A stretch of 64,000 bases of DNA from Haliotis rubra (taxonomy: Eukaryota), in assembly GCF_003918875.1 (NCBI RefSeq), contig NW_025765969.1, forward strand, positions 434,001-498,000, given 5' to 3'. Shown one piece after another: positions 10,731-64,000 of this stretch (positions are counted from its first letter, which is position 1; every line of letters begins with the position of its first letter). Made by a program: the position numbers and the translations under genes. The notes under the pieces are model-generated. The model was not told where the DNA came from. It worked only from the letters and a program-made list of their open reading frames with translations, and made no database searches.

Positions 10731-10894
10731 GGGGCAGTGGGCTAGCCTAGTGGTTAAAGTGTTCGCTCGTCACACAGAAGACCCGAGTTCGATTCCCCAC
10801 ATGGGTACAATGTGTGAAGACCATTTCTGGTGTCCCCCGCTGTGATATTGTTGGAATATTGCTGATAGCGATGTAAAACTAAACTCACTCACTC
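10731..10894 (+). mobile_element. tRNA-headed SINE family A
   Basis: A-box TAGCCTAGTGG, B-box GTTCGATTCC, tail GGAATATTGCT..GTAAAACTAAACTCACTCA; TSD CATTTC(T/C)CATGA. Confidence 0.85.
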
Positions 10895-19079: not shown

Positions 19080-21020
19080 AGTTTCTCCATCCTAATGTCA
19101 TGACAGTCTTTCAGACACCTACACCAAGGTATTCTCAGACTCATAAACAACTTCTCCATCCTAATGACTAGACAATTCTGCTTGTGATTTCTAAACAGTC
19201 TTTCAAACTCTCACATTGTGCCAGTTCCAACCACTAGGTTCTCCATCCCAATGACCGGACAAAACTGGTTGTGGTTTCTAGGACAACCTCTCTGACAGTC
19301 ACACCAAGTAATTCTCAGACATTAAGACAAGTTCTCCATACTAATGACTGGACAGGTCTGCTTTGATTTTGTCTAGGACAGACTCTCACAACATGTTCAT
19401 CTCAAACACGAAGACAACTTCTCCATCCTAATGACTAGACACGTCTGCTTGTGATTTCTAAACAGTCTTTCAAACTCTCACATTGTGCCAGTTCCAACCA
19501 CTAGGTTCTCCATCCCAATGACCGGACAAAACTGGTTGTGGTTTCTAGGACAACCTCTCTGACAGACACACCAAGTAATTCTCAGACATTAAGACAACTT
19601 CTCCATACTAATGACTGGACAGGTCTGCTTTGTTTTTGTCTAGGACAGCCTCTCACAACATGTTCATCTCAGACATTAAGACAAGTTCTCCATACTTATG
19701 ACTGGACACGTCTGCTTTGTTTTTGTCTAGGACAGCCTCTCACAACATGTTCATCTCAGACATTAAGACAAGTTCTCCATACTAATGACTGGACAGGTCT
19801 GCTTTGATTTTGTCTAGGACAGCCTCTCACAACATGTTCATCTCAGACATTAAGACAAGTTCTCCATACTTATGACTGGACACGTCTGCTTTGTTTTTGT
19901 CTAGGACAGCCTCTCACAACATGTTCATCTCAGACATTAAGACAAGTTCTCCATACTAATGACTGGACACGTCTGCTTTGTTTTTGTCTAGGACAGCCTC
20001 TCACAACATGTTCATCTCAGACATTAAGACAAGTTCTCCATACTAATGACTGGACAGGTCTGCTTTGATTTTGTCTAGGACAGCCTCTCACAACATGTTC
20101 ATCTCAGACATTAAGACAACTTCTCCATACTTATGACTGGACACGTCAGCTTTGTTTTTGTCTAGGACAGCCTCTCACAACATGTTCATCTCAGACATTA
20201 AGACAAGTTCTCCATACTTATGACTGGACCGCGTCTGCTTTGTTTTGTCTAGGACAGCCTCTCACAACATGTTCATCTCAGACATTAAGACAACTTCTCC
20301 ATACTAATGACTGGACATGTCTGCTTTGTTTTTGTCTAGGACAGCCTCTCACAACATGTTCATCTCAGACATTAAGACAACTTCTCCATAGTAATGACTG
20401 GACACGTCTGCTTTGTTTTTGTCTAGGACAGCCTCTCACAACATGTTCATCTCAGACATTAAGACAAGTTCTCCATACTTATGACTGGACACGTCTGCTT
20501 TGTTTTTGTCTAGGACAGCCTCTCACAACATGTTCATCTCAGACATTAAGACAACTTCTCCATACTAATGACTGGACACGTCTGCTTTGTTTTTGTCTAG
20601 GACAGCCTCTCACAACATGTTCATCTCAGACATTAAGACAAGTTCTCCATAGTAATGACTGGACAGGTCTGCTTTGTTTTTGTCTAGGACAGCCTCTCAC
20701 AACATGTTCATCTCAGACATTAAGACAACTTCTCCATACTTATGACTGGACACGTCTGCTTTGTTTTTGTCTAGGACAGCCTCTCACAACATGTTCATCT
20801 CAGACATTAAGACAAGTTCTCCATACTTATGACTGGACACGTCTGCTTTGTTTTTGTCTAGGACAGCCTCTCACAACATGTTCATCTCAGACATTAAGAC
20901 AAGTTCTCCATAGTAATGACTGGACAGGTCTGCTTTGTTTTTGTCTAGGACAGCCTCTCACAACATGTTCATCTCAGACATTAAGACAACTTCTCCATCC
21001 TAATGACTGGACACGTCTGC
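19080..21020. repeat. 87-bp tandem repeat derived from the 3' end of exon ZF-D
   Basis: Unit TTAAGACAAGTTCTCCATACTTATGACTGGACACGTCTGCTTTG..., ~20 copies; overlaps the ZF-D stop. Confidence 0.92.
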
Positions 21021-29331: not shown

Positions 29332-32300
29332 CATTCTCTTCCCACAGAGGTTACTTGTCATTTCTTCCTACGAACCTCTGTTCTAATACTGTCATATTTC
29401 CCGGTTCTCGTAAAATCCCCTAGCGGCATAAAATCACAACACGAATTATCTCCCTTCTTTCTGTCCAATCAGAACACGTGTTACATCAACTTGACTAATA
29501 CAAGCAAATGTTGGGTCACAAATATCCCTCCTCTGCCAGGAACGTGTGTTGATGTGACACACAAGACATTTAATGGCTAGCTTGTCCGTTGTCAACGAGG
29601 GCGATGGAGACGCCTTTGATCCGCCATTTACATGACTGAGTTTTGTCTATAAGAAACGTTTGCGCATCGCGCAGGGAAAGAGGTTCTAGTTTTCCCGAAG
29701 CATACGGAAATAACCGAGGCCTTGCAAATGATCACTTTTGAAACAACGTCGCTGATTGCCCCAGCAGCTAAGCTGTCCACATCTGGCAGACACTCAGGTG
29801 GCGTGTGTGTATGTGTGAGACAGGACATTGCAAACAAATGTGTTGAACTGAAGACTGAAATCAACAATTTTGTGTGTTTGAAATTCCATAGATTTGTATT
29901 TAATCTACCAAATGACTTATTTCTTGTTTGTATATATGTTCCCCCTGTGAATTCTACATTTTACGACCGAAGTACTGATACAAGATGTCTCATTGAAAGA
30001 CTGGAGTCGTTTTTATTAGACAACTGGTCTGATATGTCTACTTCGCATGTACTGCTATGTGGCGATTTTAATGCTTTCGTACTAGTAATAATGAAAATAA
30101 TCCTATTTGCGAAGATCGGGATGAATTTGGTAATGATGATATCTATACAGATGTAGATAATGCTCCTGTTGACCAGCGTGTGTCACATGACAGTATCGTT
30201 AACAAATTTAAGTGTACTACTGAATCTGTGTTATGTGTGTAAACTTGTTCATAATGAACGGTAGAGTAGAAGGAGACAGAGGTGGAGAGTTTACATTTGT
30301 TGGAGCAAATGGCTCAAGTGTCGTTGATTATTTTCTTGCATCTGCTGATTTGTTTGAGTTCGTAGAAAAGTTAAATGTTGGCGATAGACCTGATTCTGAC
30401 CATCTTCCTCTGGAGTTGTCGTTCAGGTTTCCTTGTACATACCGGTCTAACCGACAGTTGATTGTGCTAAGACTCCTAGTTTTAGTAAATTTGTATGGGA
30501 TGCTTCTAAGCAGAATGAATTTATAAGTTCTCTCAAAGCAAGTTTGGATGCCAATAATGAGTCAATATTTAGTAAATTGGAGACTTCTCTTGAAGAGGGC
30601 ATAGACAATTTCATAAAGTGTATATTAGATTCAGCATCTTGTATGAGGAGACAGTTTAGACAAGGTGATCTAAATCGTAAACTTAAATTTAACAAGGAGT
30701 GTAATGTAGCTAGATCGAATCAAGGAAGGCTCTTAGGCGGTTTAGGCGCTGTCGCACTGAGCAGAATCAAGAGGAGCTATTGTAAAATTAGAAATAAGTA
30801 TAAGAGTTCCTGTAGAGAGCTTTTAAGCTGTGGAGTGCAAAACTCAAGGCTATGTCGACTAAATAGTACCCTCCACAGTCCTAGGCTGTTTTGGCAAAAT
30901 ATTCGCACCCTACAAAGAGGCTCCCCACCGTATCAAGTATATCACAAACAGAATGGTTTGCCACTTCAGGGACTTGTTGTCTAAGGACGATATTATCTAT
31001 GATGTACATGATGACACAATAGATACAGATAATGGATGTGACGAGTTTAGTGATGTTGATAAGTTTCTACTTGAGTCTCCTATTACAGAATTAGAAATAG
31101 TTGATGCTGTATCTCGCCTTAAAGTTGGAAAGTCTGCTGGTGTGGATGGTGTTATTTCAGAGATGATCAAAACTGCCTTGCCTGAGATAATGCCGTTTCT
31201 AGTTAAAAGCTTTAATCGGATATTTGATTCTAGATGTTTTCCGGGCTAAATCAATAATTGTTCCATTATTTAAGAATGGAAACATAAATAACCCTAACAA
31301 TTATCGGGGCATATCTCTGACAAGTGTTGTTGGTAAAACATTTGTATCTATTATCAACAATAGGCTAACACAGTGGTCAAATATGAGGGACTTGATCCCA
31401 GATTCACAAGCTGGATTTAGAAAGGAATACTCAACCTTTGATCATATTTTTACTGTATACTCAGTAATTGAGCTGATGTTTAGCTTTTAGTAAAAGAAAA
31501 TTGTATGTAGCCTTTGTTGATTTTAGAAAGGCTTTTGATTCTGTTGACAGAGATAAAATGTGGAAATGTCTTAGAAATAGGGGTCTTAAAGGGAAAATGT
31601 TTGATATTATCAGGTCAATGTATTCAAATGTAAAGTCTTGTGTTCGATGTGATGATGCTTTCAGTGACTATTTTGATTGTCCTACTGGTGTACGACAAGG
31701 CTGTGTTCTAAGCCCCCATACTTTTCTCATTCTTTATCAACGAACTATATTTTTGACGTTATACAATCTGGCAGACATGGCATCCAATTATTTCCTGATC
31801 TTGTTGAACTTTTATTTTACTTTTTGCCTAATTTATGTGATCCTTATGTCAAGTACTGTTATTGGCCTTCAGAGACAAATTGATACACTTTCATCTTATT
31901 CAGATAACTGGTGACTTGATGTTAATCTTGAAAAGACCAAAATTGTTGTTTTTCGTAAGGGTATCAACGGCAGCTACAGAAAAGTGGTACTTTTAAATGT
32001 GAGCGTTATGACTGTTGTTAACGAATATAAATATCTAGGGATACTGTTTACACATACACTAAATCTGAACAAATCCATTATTAATTTGGCAATTAGAGGG
32101 AAAAGGGCCCAGCACTTCAATTGCTCTCTGTTATACCAAAAGTTGGGGGTTGTTGGTCCCAATATATTTTCAAATTGTTTGATTCCCAAGTACAGCCTAT
32201 TCTTCTTTATGGGTCTGAAATTTGGGGCAATAAGAATTTTATGCCATTGAAAAGGTTCACCTTCTTGCATGTAAAGGTTTTTAAATGTTGGGATGTCTAC

Positions 32301-33219
32301 CCCTAATAATATGGTGTCACGGTGAATGTGGGAGATTTCCTTTGTACATAATTTCTTACTCTCGCTGTTTAAAGTACTGGTGTAAAGTAATAAATATGCC
32401 AGAACATCGCCTGCCCAAAAACCTACAATATGATTGTCCATCTTGATAATATTGGTAAAAATACTTGGGCAACCCGTGATTCAGATTCTTTTGTTTAGAT
32501 ACGGCTTTGGATTTGTTTGGCTATCCCAAACCCTGGGCGACGTTAATGCATTTATCAAACTCTTTCGTACCAGGGCTATTGATATCTTTAAACAAGACTG
32601 GCATTCATCTTTATATGAAAGTTCAAGATATGATTGCTATCGTGAGTTTAAATCTTTACTTGAACCTGAGTCGATTATCTATACAACTTCACGTAGTAAA
32701 AGCTTCGTAGTGTTTTCATGCGCCTGAGACTTGGCCTAAATGATTTATATATCAATCAAGGAAGATATTCATCTATTATAAAATCACAAAGGTTCTGTCC
32801 ATTTTGTAATACTGTAGAGAATGAATTACACTTTCTATTTCTTTGTCCTGCATATAATGATTTAAGGCAACTGTATTTTCCTCAATGGCTACAATCAAAT
32901 ATTAATGCTACAAAACTGTATTCAATACTTTCATGTAAAGCATCCCTATTACAATATAAGGTAGCTCTATTTATTTATCACGCGCTTATATTGAGAAGAG
33001 ATTCAATGTAACGTGTGTGTCGCATGTTGTATATGTTGTATATATCATACATATTTATTCTGTATATGGGCCTCTGGCCTTCATGCAATAAACTGATACT
33101 ACACAACTAAATCTGATTGCAACCAATCACGAATCCTGAACACTCGCACCATGAAAGGGCCGTATTAGAACAGAGGTTCGTAGGAAGATATGACAAGTAA
33201 CCTCTGTGGGAAGAGAATG
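29332..33219. mobile_element. TIR element (MITE) hosting the LINE
   Basis: ~58-bp terminal inverted repeats CATTCTCTTCCCACAGAGGTTACTTGTCAT... at 29332-29389 and the reverse complement at 33162-33219. Confidence 0.8.
29620..33105 (+). mobile_element. Decayed non-LTR retrotransposon (LINE ORF2: APE endonuclease + RT + C-terminal Zn knuckle), CR1/L2 group
   Basis: Frameshifted ORFs with FCL*ETF, GRHSGGV, IYVPP, GDFNA, SVVDYF, DSDHLPL (APE); KSAGVDG, NYRGISL, QAGFR, FVDFRKAFDSV, GVRQGCVLSP, YKYLGI (RT); RFCPFC..ENELHFLFLCPAY; AATAAA at ~33088. Confidence 0.9.
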
Positions 33220-40985: not shown

Positions 40986-42260
40986 GAGCCAATCAACAGC
41001 TGGCCATGTTTTCATGCAGAGCCAATCAACAGTTTACAATGTTTTCCTTGTGAGCCAATCAACAGCTTACAAGGTTTTCCTTCTGAGCCAATCAACAGTT
41101 TACAATGATTTCCTTGTGAGCCAATCAACAGTTTACAATGTTTTCCTTGTGAGCCATCAACAGCTGGCCATGTTTTCATGCAGAGCCAATCAACAGTTTA
41201 TAATGTTTTCCTTGTGAGCCAATCAACAGTTTACAACGTTTTCCTTGTGAGCCATCAACAGCTGGCCATGTTTTCATGCAGAGCCAATCAACAGTTTACA
41301 ATGTTTTCCTTGTGAGCCAATCAACAGCTTGCCATGTTTTCATGCAGAGCCAATCAACAGTTTACAATGTTTTCCTTGTGAGCCAATCAACAGTTTACAA
41401 CAGTTTACTGTTTTCCTTGTGAGCCAATCAACAGTTTACAACGTTTTCCTTGTGAGCCAATCAACAGTTTACGATGTTTTCCTTGTGAGCCAATCAACAG
41501 TTTACAATGTTTTCCTTGTGAGCCAATCAACAGCTGGCCATGTTTTCATGCAGAGCCAATCAACAGTTTACAACGTTTTCCTTGTGAGCCAATCAACAGT
41601 TTACAACGTTTTTCCTTGTGACAGCTTGTGAGCCATCAACAGCTGGCCATGTTTTCATGCAGAGCCAATCAACAGTTTACAATGTTTTCCTTGTGAGCCA
41701 ATCAACAGTTTACAACGTTTTCCTTGTGAGCCAATCAACAGCTGGCCATGTTTTCATGCAGAGCCAATCAACAGTTTACAATGTTTTCCTTTAGTGAGCC
41801 AATCAACAGCTTGCCATGTTTTCATGCAGAGCCAATCAACAGCTTACAAGGTTTTCCTTGTGAGCCAATCAAGTTTTTCCTAGAGCCAATCAACAGCTTG
41901 CCATGTTTTCATGCAGAGCCAATCAACAGTTTACAATGTTTTCCTTGTGAGCCAATCAACAGTTTACAACGTTTTCCTTGTGAGCCAATCAACAGCTGGC
42001 CATGTTTTCATGCAGAGCCAATCAACAGTTTACAATGTTTTCCTTGTGAGCCAATCAACAGCTTGCCATGTTTTCATGCAGAGCCAATCAACAGTTTACA
42101 ATGTTTTCCTTGTGAGCCAATCAACAGCTGGCCATGTTTTCATGCAGAGCCAATCAACAGTTTACAATGTTTTCCTTGTGAGCCAATCAACAGCTGGCCA
42201 TGTTTTCATGCAGAGCCAATCAACAGTTTACAATGTTTTCATGCAAAGCCAATCAACAGG
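40986..42260. repeat. 33-bp minisatellite with two interspersed unit types, each with a CCAAT motif
   Basis: GAGCCAATCAACAGTTTACAATGTTTTCCTTGT and GAGCCAATCAACAGCTGGCCATGTTTTCATGCA, ~38 units. Confidence 0.92.
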
Positions 42261-42716
42261 TGGCAGCTGCTCATAGTTGATTGGTTGCTGAGAATCCATG
42301 AGGTGTTTTCTACATCCTTAAAGTTCAATACATGAAACATCTCCTGACCTTGAACATGTACTTTAGGCAACACTTGTTTCCTGTTCAACCAACTGAATGA
42401 AAAGACACCATCAGGAAATGAAAAATAAATTAAATTTCAGTTTCATTTGCCTGGCCATCAAACAACAATGATCCACCACATTGTAAGTAGGTTATGTAAG
42501 ATATGGTAAACAGCATTAGCTTCTCAGCAATAAAAAAACAGACCCAAACAACTTTAAGCCAAATATAACTAAAATACATGCATTTATTCTGATCAATATT
42601 CTCATTGGTTGGCAAAAATTCAAAACAAAATACATGTACCAAAAATGTGTGGTCTTGAGCCATGCCTAGCAAGGACATGTCATGGGGAATAAATGAGTGA
42701 GTGAGTGAGTTTAATT

Positions 42717-48078: not shown

Positions 48079-48830
48079 TTACTTGTCATTTTCTGTTTTG
48101 ACATCCTTGGATTCCGTGTCACTTAGAGCTGATGGTGAACCTGTGACATTTGGGGCCGACTGAGAATCCATTAGATGTGAAGCTGAGGAAGAAGACCCAA
48201 GATTTGAGGCTGATTGAGAACCCCCAACATTTGCCGCCAATTGGGAACCAACAAGATTTGAGGCTGATTGAGAACCCCCAACATTTGCCGCCAATTGGGA
48301 ACCAACAAGATTTGAGGCTGATTGAGAACCCCCAACATTTGCCGCTAATTGGGAACCAACAAGATTTGAGGCTGATTGAGAACCCACAACATTTGCCACC
48401 AATTGGGAACCAACAAGATTTGAAGCAGACTGAGATTCCATGAGATGAAGTGCCCACGAGGAGCAAATCTTTTTATGTCGCTGCAGTCCCCCACTGTACT
48501 GATACACCTTGCCACAAACACAGGAATGAGACACCTTGTTGTGGATGGCATGGATGTGATTCCATCGGGACCCTTTCCCAGCAAACATCTTGTCACAGTA
48601 AGGGCAAGCGTGGCTGCCTGATACGTCCACCCCAGTGCCAGCACTCAGACTAAACCCAGAAAACGGCATGGACACGGACCCAGGTTTGCTCCGTCCCCTG
48701 GAAGCATGAAGGAAACGGTCTCCTGTTAATGAAGAGATGGAGATTGGGGTGTTCAACTGCTTGCCGAATCCGTGAAGAAAATCATTCTGTGGGTGATCAA
48801 CTCCAACAAAGCCTCCATTACTAGACAGAT
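48079..48830 (-). CDS. Alternative terminal exon ZF-J: zinc-finger pair plus in-frame 18-aa repeat tail
   Basis: Acceptor CCTTTTCTTACTTTCAG|AT at 48830 (phase 1, in frame with the listed ORF, adding LSSNGGFVGVDHPQNDFLHGFGKQ); CPYCDKMFAGKGSRWNHIHAIH-NKVSHS-CVCGKVYQYSGGLQRHKKIC, then ~4x SQSASNLVGSQLAANVGG. Confidence 0.82.
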
Positions 48831-54604: not shown

Positions 54605-54995
54605 TGAACAATGGGGAGAGTTCTACAGATATACAACTTCTTTATTTTTAATATGAGCGACGTTTTGGTGTAGCTACTAACACTGTTGATAATGATAATG
54701 ATAATGGTGTTAGTAGCTCCACTGAAACGTCCCTCATATTAATAATAAAGAAGTTGTATATCTGTAGAACTCTCCTCATTGTTCAGGAGGTGGGGTAGCC
54801 TAGTGGTTAAAGCGTTGGCTCGTCACGCCGAAGACCCGGGTTCGAATCCCCACATGGGTACATTGTGTGAAGCCCATTTCTGGTGTCCCCCGCCGTGATG
54901 TTGCTGGAATATTGCTAAAAGCTGAGACTAAAAACTCTCAGTCAGTCAGTCAGTCATTGTTCAAAACACTGACTTCTAAATGCCACTCAAAGAAG
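54605..54995. mobile_element. Penelope-like inverted terminal remnant, copy 2 (itself interrupted by a SINE)
   Basis: Arms GATATACAACTTCTTTATT / AATAAAGAAGTTGTATATC, CGACGTTTT / GAAACGTC, and the tail ACTTCTAAATGCCACTCAAAG shared with copy 1. Confidence 0.5.
54786..54955 (+). mobile_element. SINE family A
   Basis: Full-length copy; TSD TCATTGTTCA. Confidence 0.85.
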
Positions 54996-55260
54996 TGGCC
55001 TGTAAATAATTATCTCTGGACCTGACAATCCAGTGATGAATGTATCAATGATACCAAGACAGAGACTGACCACCTGATCCACAAAGCCACCACTCACAAC
55101 CTGCTGAAGACAATTTCTAAACTAGAATACCCACAGGGGAAACATCCGAGTCAACTAATCAAGACTATAAAGGTATAAACATAAGGTTTATTTCAACATT
55201 CCCACACAATTTCCACACGGTGATGAGGTCCGAACAAACACTTAAACAGTCTTGTCAGCA

Positions 55261-55610
55261 TCAGAAGCATTTTCTTCCAGCTTCGACAGATACTGCCTGC
55301 AATTTTTTTCGGTGGAAAACAAAGTTTGGTCTGTACTTAAATACAAACCCACATACACATTCATATGTGACTTTGTCATGGATTGCCTTCTTGTGGTAGT
55401 ACAGACCACTCCTGTCCCCGAACACCTTCTCACATTGAGGACATTTATGCACCTTGTGGGGCTTAGAGGCATAGTTCTGTCTTAAACCAGCCTGTCTAAC
55501 GTAAGCACTGTTAAAACTCAAGTCTGACGGGACTGGGGCCAGTCCTGCCGAGGCCACGTGGCAATAATCCATGAAGGATTGCAATCCTGATTGTCCGTAA
55601 TCATGTAAAC
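55261..55610 (-). CDS. Alternative terminal exon ZF-M: zinc-finger pair with an apparent 1-nt frameshift before the last Cys
   Basis: Acceptor TTTTTGTTGATTTCAG|GT (phase 1); CPQCEKVFGDRSGLYYHKKAIH-DKVTYE-CVCGFVFKYRPNFVFHRKK. Removing one base from the 7-nt homopolymer at 55303-55309 restores HRKNC and moves the stop to 55242. Confidence 0.78.
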
Positions 55611-55686
55611 CTGAAATCAACAAAAATCCAATTTCAGGTACAGAAAATAGAACGTGAGCCAAGTATCCTTCAGTTTCACACGTCAT

Positions 55687-56033
55687 CTACAAAAACACAT
55701 TTCCTCGCAAATTTCCGTGGGGGCCAGAGAAACAAACAATACATGATGTGTCTCCTGCGTCAAATGGTGCAAATTCCAAGGGGACTGTGGTCGTGTTGTA
55801 TGTTTTCCCATCTGCAATAGCACAATTGTACCGATAGAACAACTGTCTATGGGCATGACATATTCTCTGAGGGTGGACACCATTGACATCTTGGGTGATA
55901 TCAATATTAAACAACTGCCACAGTTCCTTTTGACATTTTCGCGTGGAACATCCACTTCCTGTGTTCTTGCCACATATCCGACACACTTTCCGCAATCGCA
56001 TGATATGGAAGTCGAAACTATGCTGCCCGGCAA
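55687..56033 (-). CDS. Putative alternative terminal exon encoding a RAG1 N-terminal / Chapaev-transposase-like zinc-binding domain
   Basis: Acceptor GACTGACAATGGTTCTCCATTGTTCTTCAG|TT (phase 1, branch-point-like CTGAC), open for 115 codons to TAG; motifs HIMRLRKVCRICG, ELWQLFNIDITQDVNGVHPQRICHAH, EFAPFDAGDTSCIVC. Confidence 0.7.
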
Positions 56034-56290
56034 CTGAAGAACAATGGAGAACCATTGTCAGTCATAGGTCCACAAAGGTGTGATAATAGTTGTAAGGAAG
56101 ACAGTACAGAACATTTAAACATCTTTAAAGCAGCCCAGTTAACATGAAAATCAAAGACATCTCATCACAAAATTCTGGAGAAATTCAGGGATTCAAAACT
56201 GCAGGATCCCTCTACATTCTCATGATGCACTGCAAGATCTGTATTGTACTAACGATTAGGTAACACTGTGTGAGTCATTGACACAGAGAT

Positions 56291-56461
56291 TGAGTGAGTA
56301 AATGAGTATGGTTTTACACCACCTTTTTAGCAATATTCCAGCAATATCATGGCGGGGAACACCAGAAATATCCTTCTCACATTGTACCCATGTTGGGAAT
56401 CGAACCCAGGTCTTCGACGTGAAGAGCAAACACTTTAACCACTAGGCTACCTCACTATCCC
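56291..56461 (-). mobile_element. SINE family A
   Basis: Reverse copy; further copies at ~21730, ~27325, ~45356, ~56783 and ~58762. Confidence 0.8.
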
Positions 56462-56523
56462 ATTAACACAGAAGGGAATTAAACTAAAATGGTCTTCAAA
56501 GTCAGCTTAACATAATTATGACC

Positions 56524-56660
56524 TAGGGCCTTGGCATCTAATTTTAGATTGCCAACATAGGGCCTTGGCATCTAATTTTAGATTGCCAACATAGGGCCTT
56601 GGCATCTAATTTTAGATTGCCAACATAGGGCCTTGGCATCTAATTTTAGATTGCCAACAT
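56524..56660. repeat. 34-bp perfect tandem repeat with an internal hairpin, 4 copies
   Basis: TAGGGCCTTGGCATCTAATTTTAGATTGCCAACA. Confidence 0.9.
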
Positions 56661-57306
56661 ATGTACTGTATCTGACAAAACCTATTAGACTCTAACTGCT
56701 CACAACTAGATTAATCTAGTTTGAATCATGACTGCAGTGGTATGCAGATTCCCTCCCATTCAACAAAGTGACCACAGCAGAAAGTGAGTGAGTGAGCGAT
56801 CGAGTTTAGTTTTACACCGCTTTTAGCAATATTCCAGCAATATCATGGGGGGAAAAACTAGAAATGGGCTTCACACAATGTTGAGGAATCAAACCCGGAC
56901 CTTTGGCATGAATGAGCGAACACTTTAACCACTAGGCTACCCCAACACCCCCATAGCAATAAGATGATCAAGGCTCTAATACTTTAACTTACAACAGTCG
57001 TAGTGCTACAACCACTTTGTGGAATGGCTCCCCTGCCTGAAGAAAGGGGAAAATTCCACCCCTCTGACCAATTATTCGTATTTGTCACTCTGATTAGGGA
57101 GGAAAGTGGAAACTAATGCAGGTCTCAGATATTTACCACCAATAGGAAACAGACAAGTACAGGCTGCCTTTACACTTGTCTTGAAACACAATGGAAACAA
57201 ACTGGGATTTGAACCCACAATATCCGATTTCTGGTCAGAACAAGGGAGGCAACTGTGCACAGCAAATCGCACCAGATGCATGGGACACTCAATCAGCAAG
57301 GATGTT

Positions 57307-59214: not shown

Positions 59215-61205
59215 TCTGCTTAGGTAAGCACAAAACACATCATCAGTGCTCTTAAGGGCAAAAACCACATAATTGTTAATGCTTAGGTAAGCATGAATCA
59301 CATTTTTAGCGCTCTAAAACAAGCAAAAACCACACAATCTTTTACTGCTTAGGTAAGCACAACACACATCATCAGTGCTCTTAAATTGTTACAGGTAAGC
59401 ATGAATCACATTTTAAAAACAAGCAAAAACCACACAATCTTTTACTGCTTAGGTAAGCACAAAACACATCATCAGTGCTCTTAAGGGCAAAAACCACATA
59501 ATTGTTAATGCTTAGGTAAGCATGAATCACATTTTTAGCGCTCTAAAACAAGCAAAAACCACACAATCTTTTACTGCTTAGGTAAGCACAACACACATCA
59601 TCAGTGCTCTAAGACACGCAAAAACCACACAATCTTTTACTGCTTAGGTAAGCACAACACACATCATCAGTGCTCTAAGACAAGCAAAAACCACACAATC
59701 TTTTACTGCTTAGGTAAGCACAACACACATCATCAGTGCTCTAAGACACGCAAAACCACACAATTTTGCTTAGGTGCTTCATCAGTGCTCTAAGACAAGC
59801 AAAACCACACAATCTTTTACTGCTAAGGTAAGCAATAACACACATCATCAGTGCTTTAAGACAAGCAAAACCACACAATCTTTTACTGCTTAGGTAAGCA
59901 CAACACACATCATCAGTGCTCTAAGACACGCCAAAACCACACAATCTTTTTACTGCTTAGGTAAGCACAACACACATCATCAGTGCTCTAAGACAAGCAA
60001 AAAACCACACAATCTTTTACTGCTTAGGTAAGCACAACACACATCATCAGTGCTCTAAGACAAGCAAAACCACACACAATCTTTTACTGCTTAGGTAAGC
60101 ACAACACACATCATCAGTGCTCTAAGACAAGCAAAACCACACAATCTTTTACTGCTTAGGTAAGCACAACACATCATCAGTGCTCTAAGACAAGCAAAAC
60201 CACACAATCTTTTACTGCTTAGGTAAGCACAACACACATCATCAGTGCTCTAAGACAAGCAAAACCACACAATCTTTTTACTGCTTAGGTAAGCACAACA
60301 CACATCATCAGTGCTCTAAGACAAGCAAAACCACACAATCTTTTACTGCTTAGGTAAGCACAACACACATCATCAGTGCTCTAAGACAAGCAAAACCACA
60401 CAATCTTTTACTGTTTAGGTAAGCACAACACACATCATCAGTGCTCTAAGACAAGCAAAACCACACAATCTTTTACTGCTTAGGTAAGCACAACACACAT
60501 CATCAGTGCTCTAAGACAAGCAAAAACCACACAATCTTTTACTGCTTAGGTAAGCACAACACACATCATCAGTGCTCTAAGACAAGCAAAACCACACAAT
60601 CTTTTACTGCTTAGGTAAGCTGTACACACATCATCAGTGCTCTAAGACAAGCAAAAACCACACAATCTTTTACTGCTTAGGTAAGCACAACACACATCAT
60701 CAGTGCTCTAAGACAAGCAAAAACCACACAATCTTTTACTGCTTAGGTAAGCACAACACACATCATCAGTGCTCTAAGACAAGCAAAAACCACACAATCT
60801 TTTACTGCTTAGGTAAGCACAACACACATCATCAGTGCTCTAAGACAAGCAAAAACCACACAATCTTTTACTGCTTAGGTAAGCACAACACACATCATCA
60901 GTGCTCTAAGACAAGCAAAAACCACACAATCTTTTACTGCTTAGGTAAGCACAACACACATCATCAGTGCTCTAAGACAAGCAAAAACCACACAATCTTT
61001 TACTGCTTAGGTAAGCACAACACACATCATCAGTGCTCTAAGACAAGCAAAACCACACAATCTTTTACTGCTTCATCAGGTAAGACAAGCAAAACACATC
61101 TTTTACTGCTTAGGTAAGCACAACACACATCATCAGTGCTCTAAGACAAGCAAAAACCATACAATCTTTTACTGCTTAGGTAAGCACAACACACATCATC
61201 AGTTC
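59215..61205. repeat. ~65-bp minisatellite
   Basis: Unit TACTGCTTAGGTAAGCACAACACACATCATCAGTGCTCTAAGACAAGCAAAACCACACAATCTTT, ~30 copies. Confidence 0.95.
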
Positions 61206-61227
61206 CCTAAAGAGCAAGCACAACTTT

Positions 61228-61600: not shown

Positions 61601-61914
61601 CACAAGAACAACTTTATTATTTACTGCTTAGGTAGGCACAAATCACATCTCCAGGGCTCCAGATAAATATTTCATGATCAGGAGTATGTACTCCTTACTT
61701 TTTTCAATATAGGAGTACTGGAAAACAGTAAGAGTACATTTAGAGTACTGAATGGAATTTAATGGAGTATCAGTAATCTTGTGTTTCGTTTCATATATGC
61801 ACCACAACATTGCTACTCTTGTATAAACAGGTCAATAAACAATAAAACAATACTTTTTTCAGATAAATATGTCGGTAAATGATTCTAAGACCGTACACCA
61901 TTGCTGTGGTGCGT

Positions 61915-63487
61915 CAATATACCCGTCATCAGGCTACCTATAACATCAGGCAAAGCGTCAATTAACCCCCATAGTGGTAACACAAGTACAATATACCAGT
62001 CATCTGGCTACCCATAACATCAGGCAAAGCGTCAGTTAACCCCGGTAGTGGTAACACAAGTACAATATACCAGTCATCTGGCTACCCATTACATCAGGCA
62101 AAGCGTCAGTTAACCCCAGCTGTGGTAACACAAGTTCAATATACCCGTCATCAGGCTACCTGTTACATCAGGCAAAGCATCAGTTAACCCCTGCTGTGGT
62201 AACACAAGTTCAATATACCCGTCATCAGGCTACCTGTTACATCAGGCAAAGCGTCAATTAACCCCAGTAGTGGTAACACAAGTACAATATACCATCATCA
62301 GGCTACCTGTTACATCAGGCAAAGCGTCAATTAACCACAGTAGTGGTAACACAAGTACAATATACCGTCATCAGGCTACCTGTTACATCAGGCAAAGCGT
62401 CAATTAACCCCAGTAGTGGTAACACAAGTACAATATACCCGTCATCAGGCAAAGCGTCAATTAACCCCTGCTGTGGTAACACAAGTACAATATACCAGTT
62501 AGCTGGCTACCCATAACATCAGGCAAAGCGTCAGTTAACCCCAGTAGTGGTAACATCAGGCAAAGCGTCAGTTAACCCCTGCTGTGGTAACACAAGTTCA
62601 ATATACCCGTCATCAGGCTACCTGTTACATCAGGCAAAGCGTCAGTTAACCCCTGCTGTGGTAACACAAGTTCAATATACCTGTCATCAGGCTACCTGTT
62701 ACATCAGGCAAAGCTTAACCCCTGCTGTGGTAACACAAGTTCAATATACCCGCATCAGGCTACCTGTTACAGTTAAAGTGTCAGTTAACCCCTGCTGTGG
62801 TAACACAAGTTCAATATACCCGCCATCAGGCTACCTGTTACATCAGGCAAAGCAATTAACCCCTGCTGTGGTAACACAAGTTCAATATACCACCAGTCAT
62901 CCCTACCTGTTACATCAGGCAAAGCGTCAGTTAACCCCTGCTGTGGTAACACAAGTTCAATATACAAAGCGTCATCAGGCTTCAATATACCTGTCATCAG
63001 GCTACCTGTTACATCAGGCAAAGCGTCAGTTAACCCCTGCTGTGGTAACACAAGTTCAATATACCCGTCATCAGGCTACCTGTTACATCAGGCAAAGTGT
63101 CAATTAACCCCACAAGTTCAATATACCTGTCATCAGGCTACCTGTTACATCAGGCAAAGTGTCAGTTAACCCCGGTAGTGGTAACACAAGTTCAATATAC
63201 CTGTCATCAGGCTACCTGTTACATCAGGCAAAGCGTCAATTAACCCCAGTAGTGGTAACACAAGTTCAATATACCTGTCATCAGGCTACCTATTACATCA
63301 GGCAAAGCGTANCAGTTAACCCCTGTAGTGGTAACACAAGTTCAATATACCTGTCATCAGGCTACCTGTTACATCAGGCAAAGTCCAGTTAACCCCACAA
63401 GTTCAATATACCTGTCATCAGGCTACCTGTTACATCAGGCAAAGTGTCAGTTAACCCCAGGTAGTGGTAACACAAGTTCAACATACC
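61915..63487. repeat. 74-bp minisatellite
   Basis: Unit CAATATACCCGTCATCAGGCTACCTGTTACATCAGGCAAAGCGTCAGTTAACCCCTGCTGTGGTAACACAAGTT, ~21 copies; one N at 63312. Confidence 0.92.
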
Positions 63488-64000
63488 TCCAGCTAGGTAG
63501 AGTCATTCTCTCCCAGCCCTATAACTGTACCATTCAACAACGCACCTGCTAAACAGGCCCAAGTTAGTAAAACAAACCTGTCTATTGTAGGTGTGGTGTA
63601 TGTACTGCAGTGTTTGAAATTAAGCAAGGCAGTAGGTCCTTGTAATAATCCCAAGGTTAAAAGCTTTAGAGTGAAGCTTCCCTTCCCTTCGATTCAATAC
63701 ATTCACAGCCCCTCTGGCCCCGAATTTCAAACACTGTACAAGGGGAAGAAAACAATGGTAAAATCTGCTTCACAAGTTCAGTTGTTACCTGGGTAGACGG
63801 CACCAGTTTATTCCGAGGGACAATTTATATCAGACATGTGAATGATAAAACATCACTTCAGTTCGGACACAACCACAAATTTGTGTATCAGGAATCTTAG
63901 CCATGAAGACAACGGGTAACCATGTCTGGCGCTGACCATGTTTTGAGAAAATGGTTACAAAGCAGAGCTTGTCACAATGATACCAAATTTACCTCACTGT

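Follow-up and report, generated by a model that had tools for sequence, protein, structure and literature searches.

A RAG1-type zinc domain as a conserved alternative terminal exon of an abalone zinc-finger array gene

Background

When a piece of DNA that resembles part of a transposase lies within an array of zinc-finger exons, does it belong to the host gene or to a dead mobile element? This question is raised by a stretch of 64,000 nucleotides from the abalone Haliotis rubra (contig NW_025765969.1, positions 434,001 to 498,000), which we call the window and whose own coordinates we use throughout. An earlier note, made from the letters alone, saw at 55687-56033 a 115-codon frame resembling the N-terminal region of RAG1, and proposed that a transposase-derived module had been domesticated there into a cassette of alternative exons. 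We will argue that family membership, gene models, an RNA contig and purifying selection all support this proposal: a RAG1-type zinc finger has been exapted and conserved as an alternative exon. That it came from a transposon, that zinc occupies its second site and that it binds DNA are what we infer. Our full explanation is that this is a conserved, alternatively spliced last coding exon encoding a captured RAG1-type module, which serves as alternative targeting for DNA or chromatin, and we consider it quite probable.

Two known systems frame the problem. The insect genes lola and mod(mdg4) have one common 5' part and many alternative C-terminal exons that carry zinc-finger or FLYWCH modules. 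The domain itself, NZD, has been solved and has two interlocked zinc sites, ZFa (C110, C113, C175, C178) and ZFb (H102, H206, C210, C213) (Hong et al. 2026, bioRxiv 10.64898/2026.01.24.700457). The same preprint finds it consistently only in RAG1, in RAG1-like proteins and in Chapaev transposases, where it is called the Chapa domain, and describes invertebrate forms that lack helix H2. Our search of the literature found no paper on the abalone exon or its proteins, or on host use of the Chapa domain or NZD outside RAG1.

Results and Discussion

Identity of the domain

The likeness to RAG1 is not due to chance. The motifs quoted in the earlier note are present, and the peptide matches the Pfam family PF12560 (RAG1_imp_bd) with an E-value of 3e-9 and 37.3 bits, above the cut-off of 23.3 bits. 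Searching all PDB chains with phmmer recovers the isolated RAG1 N-terminal domain, 21wb (E 4.3e-7), and full-length mouse RAG1 (E 7e-5). The phmmer alignment pairs H10, C18, C21, C59, C98 and C101 of the peptide with mouse H102, C110, C113, C175, C210 and C213. An exhaustive HMMER search with the peptide through 1.84 billion representatives gave 97 matches, 65 of which were aligned for the family analysis. C18, C59 and C98 are invariant in that alignment, and H10, C21, C101 and the column of mouse H206 are conserved in at least 90%.

The fold agrees. Given the 65-member alignment, AlphaFold2 models the peptide with a pLDDT of 87.1 and a pTM of 0.78, and places helices at 7-14, 31-42 and 60-74, an arrangement of H1, H3 and H4 with H2 missing. 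All of the top eight Foldseek matches in Swiss-Prot are RAG1 at residues of about 91-223, with probability 1.0 and TM by query of 0.55-0.62. When Foldseek is run against a copy of the PDB that lacks the solved NZD, weak matches to ZAD and nuclear-receptor structures remain. ZAD is the best of these (E 0.1-0.2, TM 0.3-0.47) and covers the first zinc module, a likeness also reported for NZD by the preprint (bioRxiv 10.64898/2026.01.24.700457). Some family members match zf-AD (PF07776) weakly; the abalone peptide has no Pfam match to it, even at an E-value of 10, and unlike ZAD it also has the N- and C-terminal elements of the second module (H10, C98, C101). By profile, sequence and fold, then, the exon peptide belongs to the RAG1 NZD/Chapa family.

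The earlier note had remarked on two changed zinc ligands, and both are there, but they are not of one kind. The first zinc site, ZFa, is complete in the abalone peptide (C18, C21, C59, H62). The position of mouse C178 is occupied by His, which gives CHAH, and 26 of the 65 family members have His there as well. Judged from the alignment, CxxC to CxxH at this site is an ordinary family variant, not a peculiarity of this exon. The second change is peculiar to abalone and is taken up below among the objections. In all, the peptide keeps seven of the eight canonical family ligand positions, and it is predicted to fold with at least one full zinc site and one modified site.

The exon and its host gene

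The structural claims of the earlier note are correct in detail. The exon is on the minus strand, as is the array. Its coding part (55690-56033, phase 1) starts at 56033, immediately after the AG at 56035-56034, with two nucleotides of a split codon followed by 114 codons, which makes 115 residues with the split first codon. The frame is intact and closes with TAG at 55689-55687, a stop that H. rufescens keeps and at which the RefSeq proteins of H. rufescens and H. asinina end. The intron end (56034-56078) has CTGAC at 56061-56057, 24-28 nt upstream of the acceptor, then a pyrimidine tract and the AG. A spacer of 76 nt (55611-55686, 81% identical to H. rufescens) separates the stop from the acceptor of the next alternative terminal exon, ZF-M (55261-55610, minus strand), which encodes a C2H2 + C2HC finger pair and matches Pfam zf-C2H2. 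The acceptors at 56033 and 55610 are both phase 1 and lie 423 nt apart.

The host gene is H. rubra LOC124274985, the orthologue of H. rufescens LOC124128061. Its common exon lies about 3 kb past the end of the window and was read from H. rubra QXJH01000197.1, which is 100% identical to the window. The H. rufescens common exon ends GAT G|GTAATT, a phase-1 donor that matches the array acceptors. The H. rufescens locus is collinear with the window; there the alternative exons begin with the NZD exon, at a distance of 8.3 kb from the common exon, and about 15 finger exons follow. The window carries at least 13 finger exons on its minus strand. The array gene as a whole has about 15 alternative terminal exons, and 14-15 encode the C2H2 + C2HC pair.

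Gene models of other abalones already use the exon. The best match to the peptide is a 384-residue RefSeq protein of H. asinina, XP_067669401, at 94% identity. Both this protein and H. rufescens XP_046347475 consist of a 269-residue common region and the NZD exon, joined exactly at 56033. The RefSeq entries with the exon are named 'uncharacterized', with the Pfam match precomputed. In H. rubra, isoform X1 of LOC124274985 also uses the NZD exon, but misframed. The end of the H. rubra common exon (10780-10835 of the fetched locus) has two extra bases, GC, before the donor when compared with H. rufescens, so the RefSeq isoforms of LOC124274985 all lose the frame after 'NDNSA': in X1 the NZD exon is read in a wrong frame, and the tails of the others are nonsense. 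Since the downstream exons are all intact in phase 1, the extra GC is probably an assembly error or a very recent change. The alternative frame at 55683-56033 (minus strand), open for 116 codons, is read in RefSeq solely owing to this 2-nt discrepancy. We rejected it as coding: its omega is 3.2 and H. rufescens has a stop in it.

The gene is one of four paralogues on one abalone chromosome. Their common region is present in many isoforms, most of which end in C2H2 fingers, and NZD is the only non-C2H2 domain family among 115 isoforms of the four genes. Each locus examined with the domain has one copy of it, and it is missing altogether from a paralogous locus that has 46 finger exons or more.

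The earlier note compared this arrangement with mod(mdg4). As far as gene layout goes the comparison is a good one: as in lola and mod(mdg4), one common donor serves mutually exclusive terminal exons of the same phase, mostly with two fingers, and in abalone one slot of the array holds a transposase-type zinc domain. It fails at the common region, which lacks BTB; residues 1-120 of the four paralogues match no Pfam family at E-values up to 10, BTB included. A further difference is that the abalone genes are four. The first 88 residues of the common exon hardly vary among the four genes, whose identity is otherwise 57-64%. For the common N-terminal part, AlphaFold2 reaches a pLDDT of 49 from 12 near-identical paralogues, too low for a confident model, and the language-model neighbours of these 88 residues are unnamed mollusc and annelid proteins.

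Splicing and selection

Is the exon used, or has it been swept into gene models by chance? An RNA contig from run X3, which carries another species label, aligns to 55663-56034 without a gap and differs at 15 positions. It leaves its match to the genome at the acceptor and runs on for 40 letters that are unlike the intron. RNA contigs in three runs cover ZF-M, and one of them breaks in the same way at 55611, with 40 further unlike letters.

The NZD exon is 92.7% identical to that of H. rufescens over 344 nt with no gaps. The 45 nt before its acceptor are 100% identical, and the intron upstream falls to 45-66% and then becomes unalignable. Of the 25 differences between the two exons, 15 are synonymous (dN 0.038, dS 0.233, omega 0.165), a comparison made on this one pair of species at the DNA level with a third species as protein sequence. 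The synonymous excess has a binomial P of 4e-5 under neutrality, and the other two frames have omegas of 1.0 and 3.2. In eleven neighbouring exons the finger cores show dN of 0-0.07 and omega of 0-0.13, so the NZD exon is constrained about as much as its neighbours. Gene models in two other abalones, the RNA contig, the conserved splice signals and purifying selection together show that the zinc-finger array gene does use this stretch as an alternative terminal exon.

It could be objected that we are looking at a dead Chapaev-like or N-RAG-TP-like fragment in the first array intron, functionless and included in gene models by chance. The domain is otherwise found in transposases, one conserved zinc ligand has been lost and RNA depth is low in H. 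rubra, all of which would suit such a fragment. However, a dead fragment should not go through 344 nt without an indel or stop at a dS of 0.23, nor show purifying selection in the NZD frame only, nor keep 45 nt of splice signal perfectly amid a decaying intron. It would also have to be single-copy with neither transposase core nor terminal inverted repeats (TIRs), and to appear spliced both in an RNA contig and in gene models from three species. We believe this alternative is already largely refuted and regard it as extremely improbable.

The two assembly letters in doubt within this block deserve mention in their own right. At 55964 the assembly has T (Asn23 of the NZD peptide), where the DNA contig of run X16, the RNA contig of run X3, H. 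rufescens and H. asinina have C (Ser). On these sequences the assembly T is a minority allele or an error. In ZF-M, an A-run at 55303-55309 (minus strand) is A7 in the window and A6 in H. rufescens. With A7 the reading frame changes, and the second finger, of C2HC type, is left without its final Cys (HRKKLQ... in place of HRKNC...). RNA contigs labelled H. rubra cover 55231-55481 with zero mismatches and one gap, and the gap points to a homopolymer error in the assembly.

Copy number and surroundings

If the exon were part of a transposon family we would expect to see copies. DNA depth across the NZD exon is 18-23, equal to that of the unique flanks, and the DNA contig that covers 54937-56325 has a depth of 18; counting sequences of at least 88% likeness, the exon is therefore single-copy. 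The neighbouring SINEs reach 1e5-1e7.

Nor is there any other part of a transposon nearby, as the earlier note had said. We took 24 long NZD-bearing proteins of 500-1290 residues and used tblastn to look for a transposase core; only their NZD part matches the window or the two orthologous loci of 103-115 kb. No terminal inverted repeats surround the exon, the only inverted repeat there being a pair of SINEs. This pair (54790-54920 and 56325-56455) was considered as TIRs and rejected: the two are copies of a tRNA-derived SINE that occurs 22-41 times per locus of about 100 kb, and the inverted pair is absent from the orthologous H. rufescens site. We conclude that the locus belongs to no transposon family, and that the NZD exon is a functional alternative terminal exon and not a transposon fossil.

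Origin

Where did the domain come from? The best matches outside abalone are 27-41% identical and are the N-terminal domains of proteins of about 500-1300 residues. The other parts of these proteins are a RAG1 core, DUF6589, RING + DUF1280 or a TNP-like RNase H, and some have tandem NZD copies. That the DUF6589 proteins are Chapaev elements could not be confirmed. A word-indexed search with the NZD part alone returned only the abalone cluster and no near relative.

Elsewhere, then, the domain is broadly distributed and linked to transposases, whereas in abalone it is found in one host gene, a contrast that favours its capture from a mobile element. Most likely the exon began as a piece of a transposase that inserted into the first array intron and became exonised, and the capture would have preceded the divergence of the sampled Haliotis species.

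The comparison with known forms makes clear what would have changed. The abalone peptide shares the domain family and the H1-H3-H4 layout without H2 with the Chapa domain of Chapaev, Chapaev3 and TransibSU and with N-RAG-TP of Aplysia (PMC4411706; PMC8355894). Unlike Chapaev and N-RAG-TP, the abalone exon has no transposase core or TIRs, is single-copy, is under purifying selection and is spliced to a host exon, and its NZD sits on a long isolated branch. It matches RAG1 NZD in sequence and in fold (91-223), keeping H102, C110, C113, C175, C210 and C213; it differs in lacking helix H2 and in having His for C178 and Phe for H206. Everywhere else the module sits at the N-terminus, in RAG1 and RAG1-like proteins, in Chapaev-like transposases and in others. 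In abalone an alternatively spliced exon supplies it as the C-terminus of a protein of 384 residues, which is no recombinase.

Function

What would such a module do? The phase-1 donor of the common exon (about 270 residues) is joined to one of about 15 terminal exons. When the NZD exon, the first of the array, is chosen, the product is the 384-residue protein with the module at its C-terminus. The N-terminal position in transposases is usually that of the domain that binds the ends of the element. The abalone module is basic, with 13 K/R against 8 D/E. Because it is basic, stands in the slot of sequence-specific fingers and descends from a part that usually binds ends, a role as a DNA or chromatin targeting module is favoured. 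We hold this tentatively, as a role that is quite possible. The module may even recognise transposon-derived sequences.

The stronger statement would be that molluscs domesticated NZD/Chapa independently, the sole known case besides RAG1, and that it serves as a free-standing, interchangeable targeting module in a slot made for finger pairs. As a whole we consider this doubtful.

A different role has been proposed for the RAG1 domain. Hong et al. (2026) suggest that RAG1 NZD is a regulatory scaffold, and the abalone exon could likewise be real and conserved and yet encode a protein-interaction or regulatory scaffold, or a dominant-negative isoform that lacks the DNA-binding finger pair. The first zinc module resembles ZAD, a dimerisation domain, which also gives the best fold matches in the PDB. 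Should isoforms associate by way of their invariant N-terminal 88 residues, one without fingers could modulate the others. Against this, NZD is monomeric in solution (bioRxiv 10.64898/2026.01.24.700457). The basic charge, the place in the array and the position in transposases argue the same way, though none of these points, the monomer included, is decisive. A scaffold role is possible but in our view rather unlikely.

Points against the proposed explanation

Our explanation of a captured and spliced targeting module has to be weighed against a number of observations that do not favour it. The first concerns the second zinc site, ZFb. H10, C98 and C101 are present and the fourth canonical ligand is missing: at the position of H206 the three abalone sequences all have Phe, where the other 62 have His. 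With H206 replaced by Phe, the second site is without one canonical ligand, and from the alignment it may be rewired or weakened, perhaps lost. H5, D92 and a His at 105/106, all of them fully or almost fully conserved among the abalone sequences, are candidates to replace the missing ligand.

The second concerns the origin. When the 65 family members are placed in a tree, the abalone sequences form a clade with a long stem (1.69) that arises from an unresolved polytomy. There being no supported sister group, no donor lineage can be named, whether Chapaev-type, RAG1-like or other, and distribution is the only evidence for the direction of transfer. The third concerns binding, as DNA-binding data are absent for any NZD or Chapa domain (bioRxiv 10.64898/2026.01.24.700457).

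The remaining points concern the transcript. The 40 letters beyond the acceptor are identified as the common exon by inference. Depth in the H. rubra RNA runs is below 1 over the NZD exon and 3-5 over ZF-M, so expression of the NZD exon looks low there. The NZD contig ends 24 nt past the stop, with no link to ZF-M, and the spacer at 55611-55686 has neither AATAAA nor ATTAAA. The sole poly(A) signal within 500 nt downstream of the NZD stop is the AATAAA at 55187-55192 (minus strand), 3' of ZF-M and kept in H. rufescens; an RNA contig from run X3 ends just past it, at 55172. The NZD isoform would use this ZF-M poly(A) site.

This arrangement allows another reading, that 56033 is a 'poison' acceptor whose use puts a stop ahead of ZF-M and so controls ZF-M output, the protein product being of no account. 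The absence of a poly(A) signal between the NZD stop and ZF-M would fit such control, and so would two acceptors only 423 nt apart. But it is the amino-acid sequence that is under purifying selection, an omega of 0.165 over 114 codons is unexpected for a purely regulatory exon, and seven of eight family ligand positions are kept together with the fold. We think this reading very improbable and continue to prefer a captured module that is translated. A fusion of NZD to ZF-M through a donor inside the NZD exon was also considered and rejected: by eye there is no conserved phase-matched donor, and no joint of that kind is among the RNA joints listed.

Other features of the locus

ZF-M is 89% identical to its H. 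rufescens counterpart, with a dN/dS of 0.05 in the finger core, and the final 30 nt or so of the spacer, the ZF-M acceptor region, are identical. Further along the array, the terminal exon at 48079-48756 (minus strand) encodes a finger pair followed by a long serine-rich tandem repeat (SQSASNLVGSQLAANVGG...) and probably corresponds to the longest isoforms, of 472-473 residues. Array size varies among paralogues: the gene of the window has 14-15 finger exons, and a paralogue in H. cracherodii has 46 or more within 97 kb.

The array introns hold much repetitive DNA. Copies of the tRNA-derived SINE lie at 54790-54920, 56325-56455 and 56785-56958, two of them inverted at 88% around the block of NZD and ZF-M, and SINE summed word depth is up to 1e7 in DNA and RNA runs. 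Tandem repeats occur at 56521-56690 (34-nt unit), and longer satellites at 59216-61224, 61911-63492, 19100-21020 and 40986-42264; some of the tandem repeats are common to H. rufescens at 72-78% identity. On the opposite strand (+), at 29700-33000, an array intron contains a string of open reading frames that, by eye from the translations only, has the look of a retroelement.

Conclusions

The abalone exon would be a second, independent host use of a RAG1-type NZD, and one in a protein that is not a recombinase. The NZD fold has been kept under selection throughout sampled abalone history in a place where sister isoforms carry DNA-reading fingers. This suggests that NZD can work alone, and what the fold binds could be tested on a protein that is small and tractable. 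The case also shows that lola-like exon arrays outside insects can take up transposase modules. If the module is indeed an independent targeting module, NZD would be an autonomous reader of nucleic acid or chromatin, perhaps one that still recognises the ends of its parent transposon family. In that case the abalone isoform could sense or repress transposons, and it would give a handle on the function of the RAG1 N-terminus.
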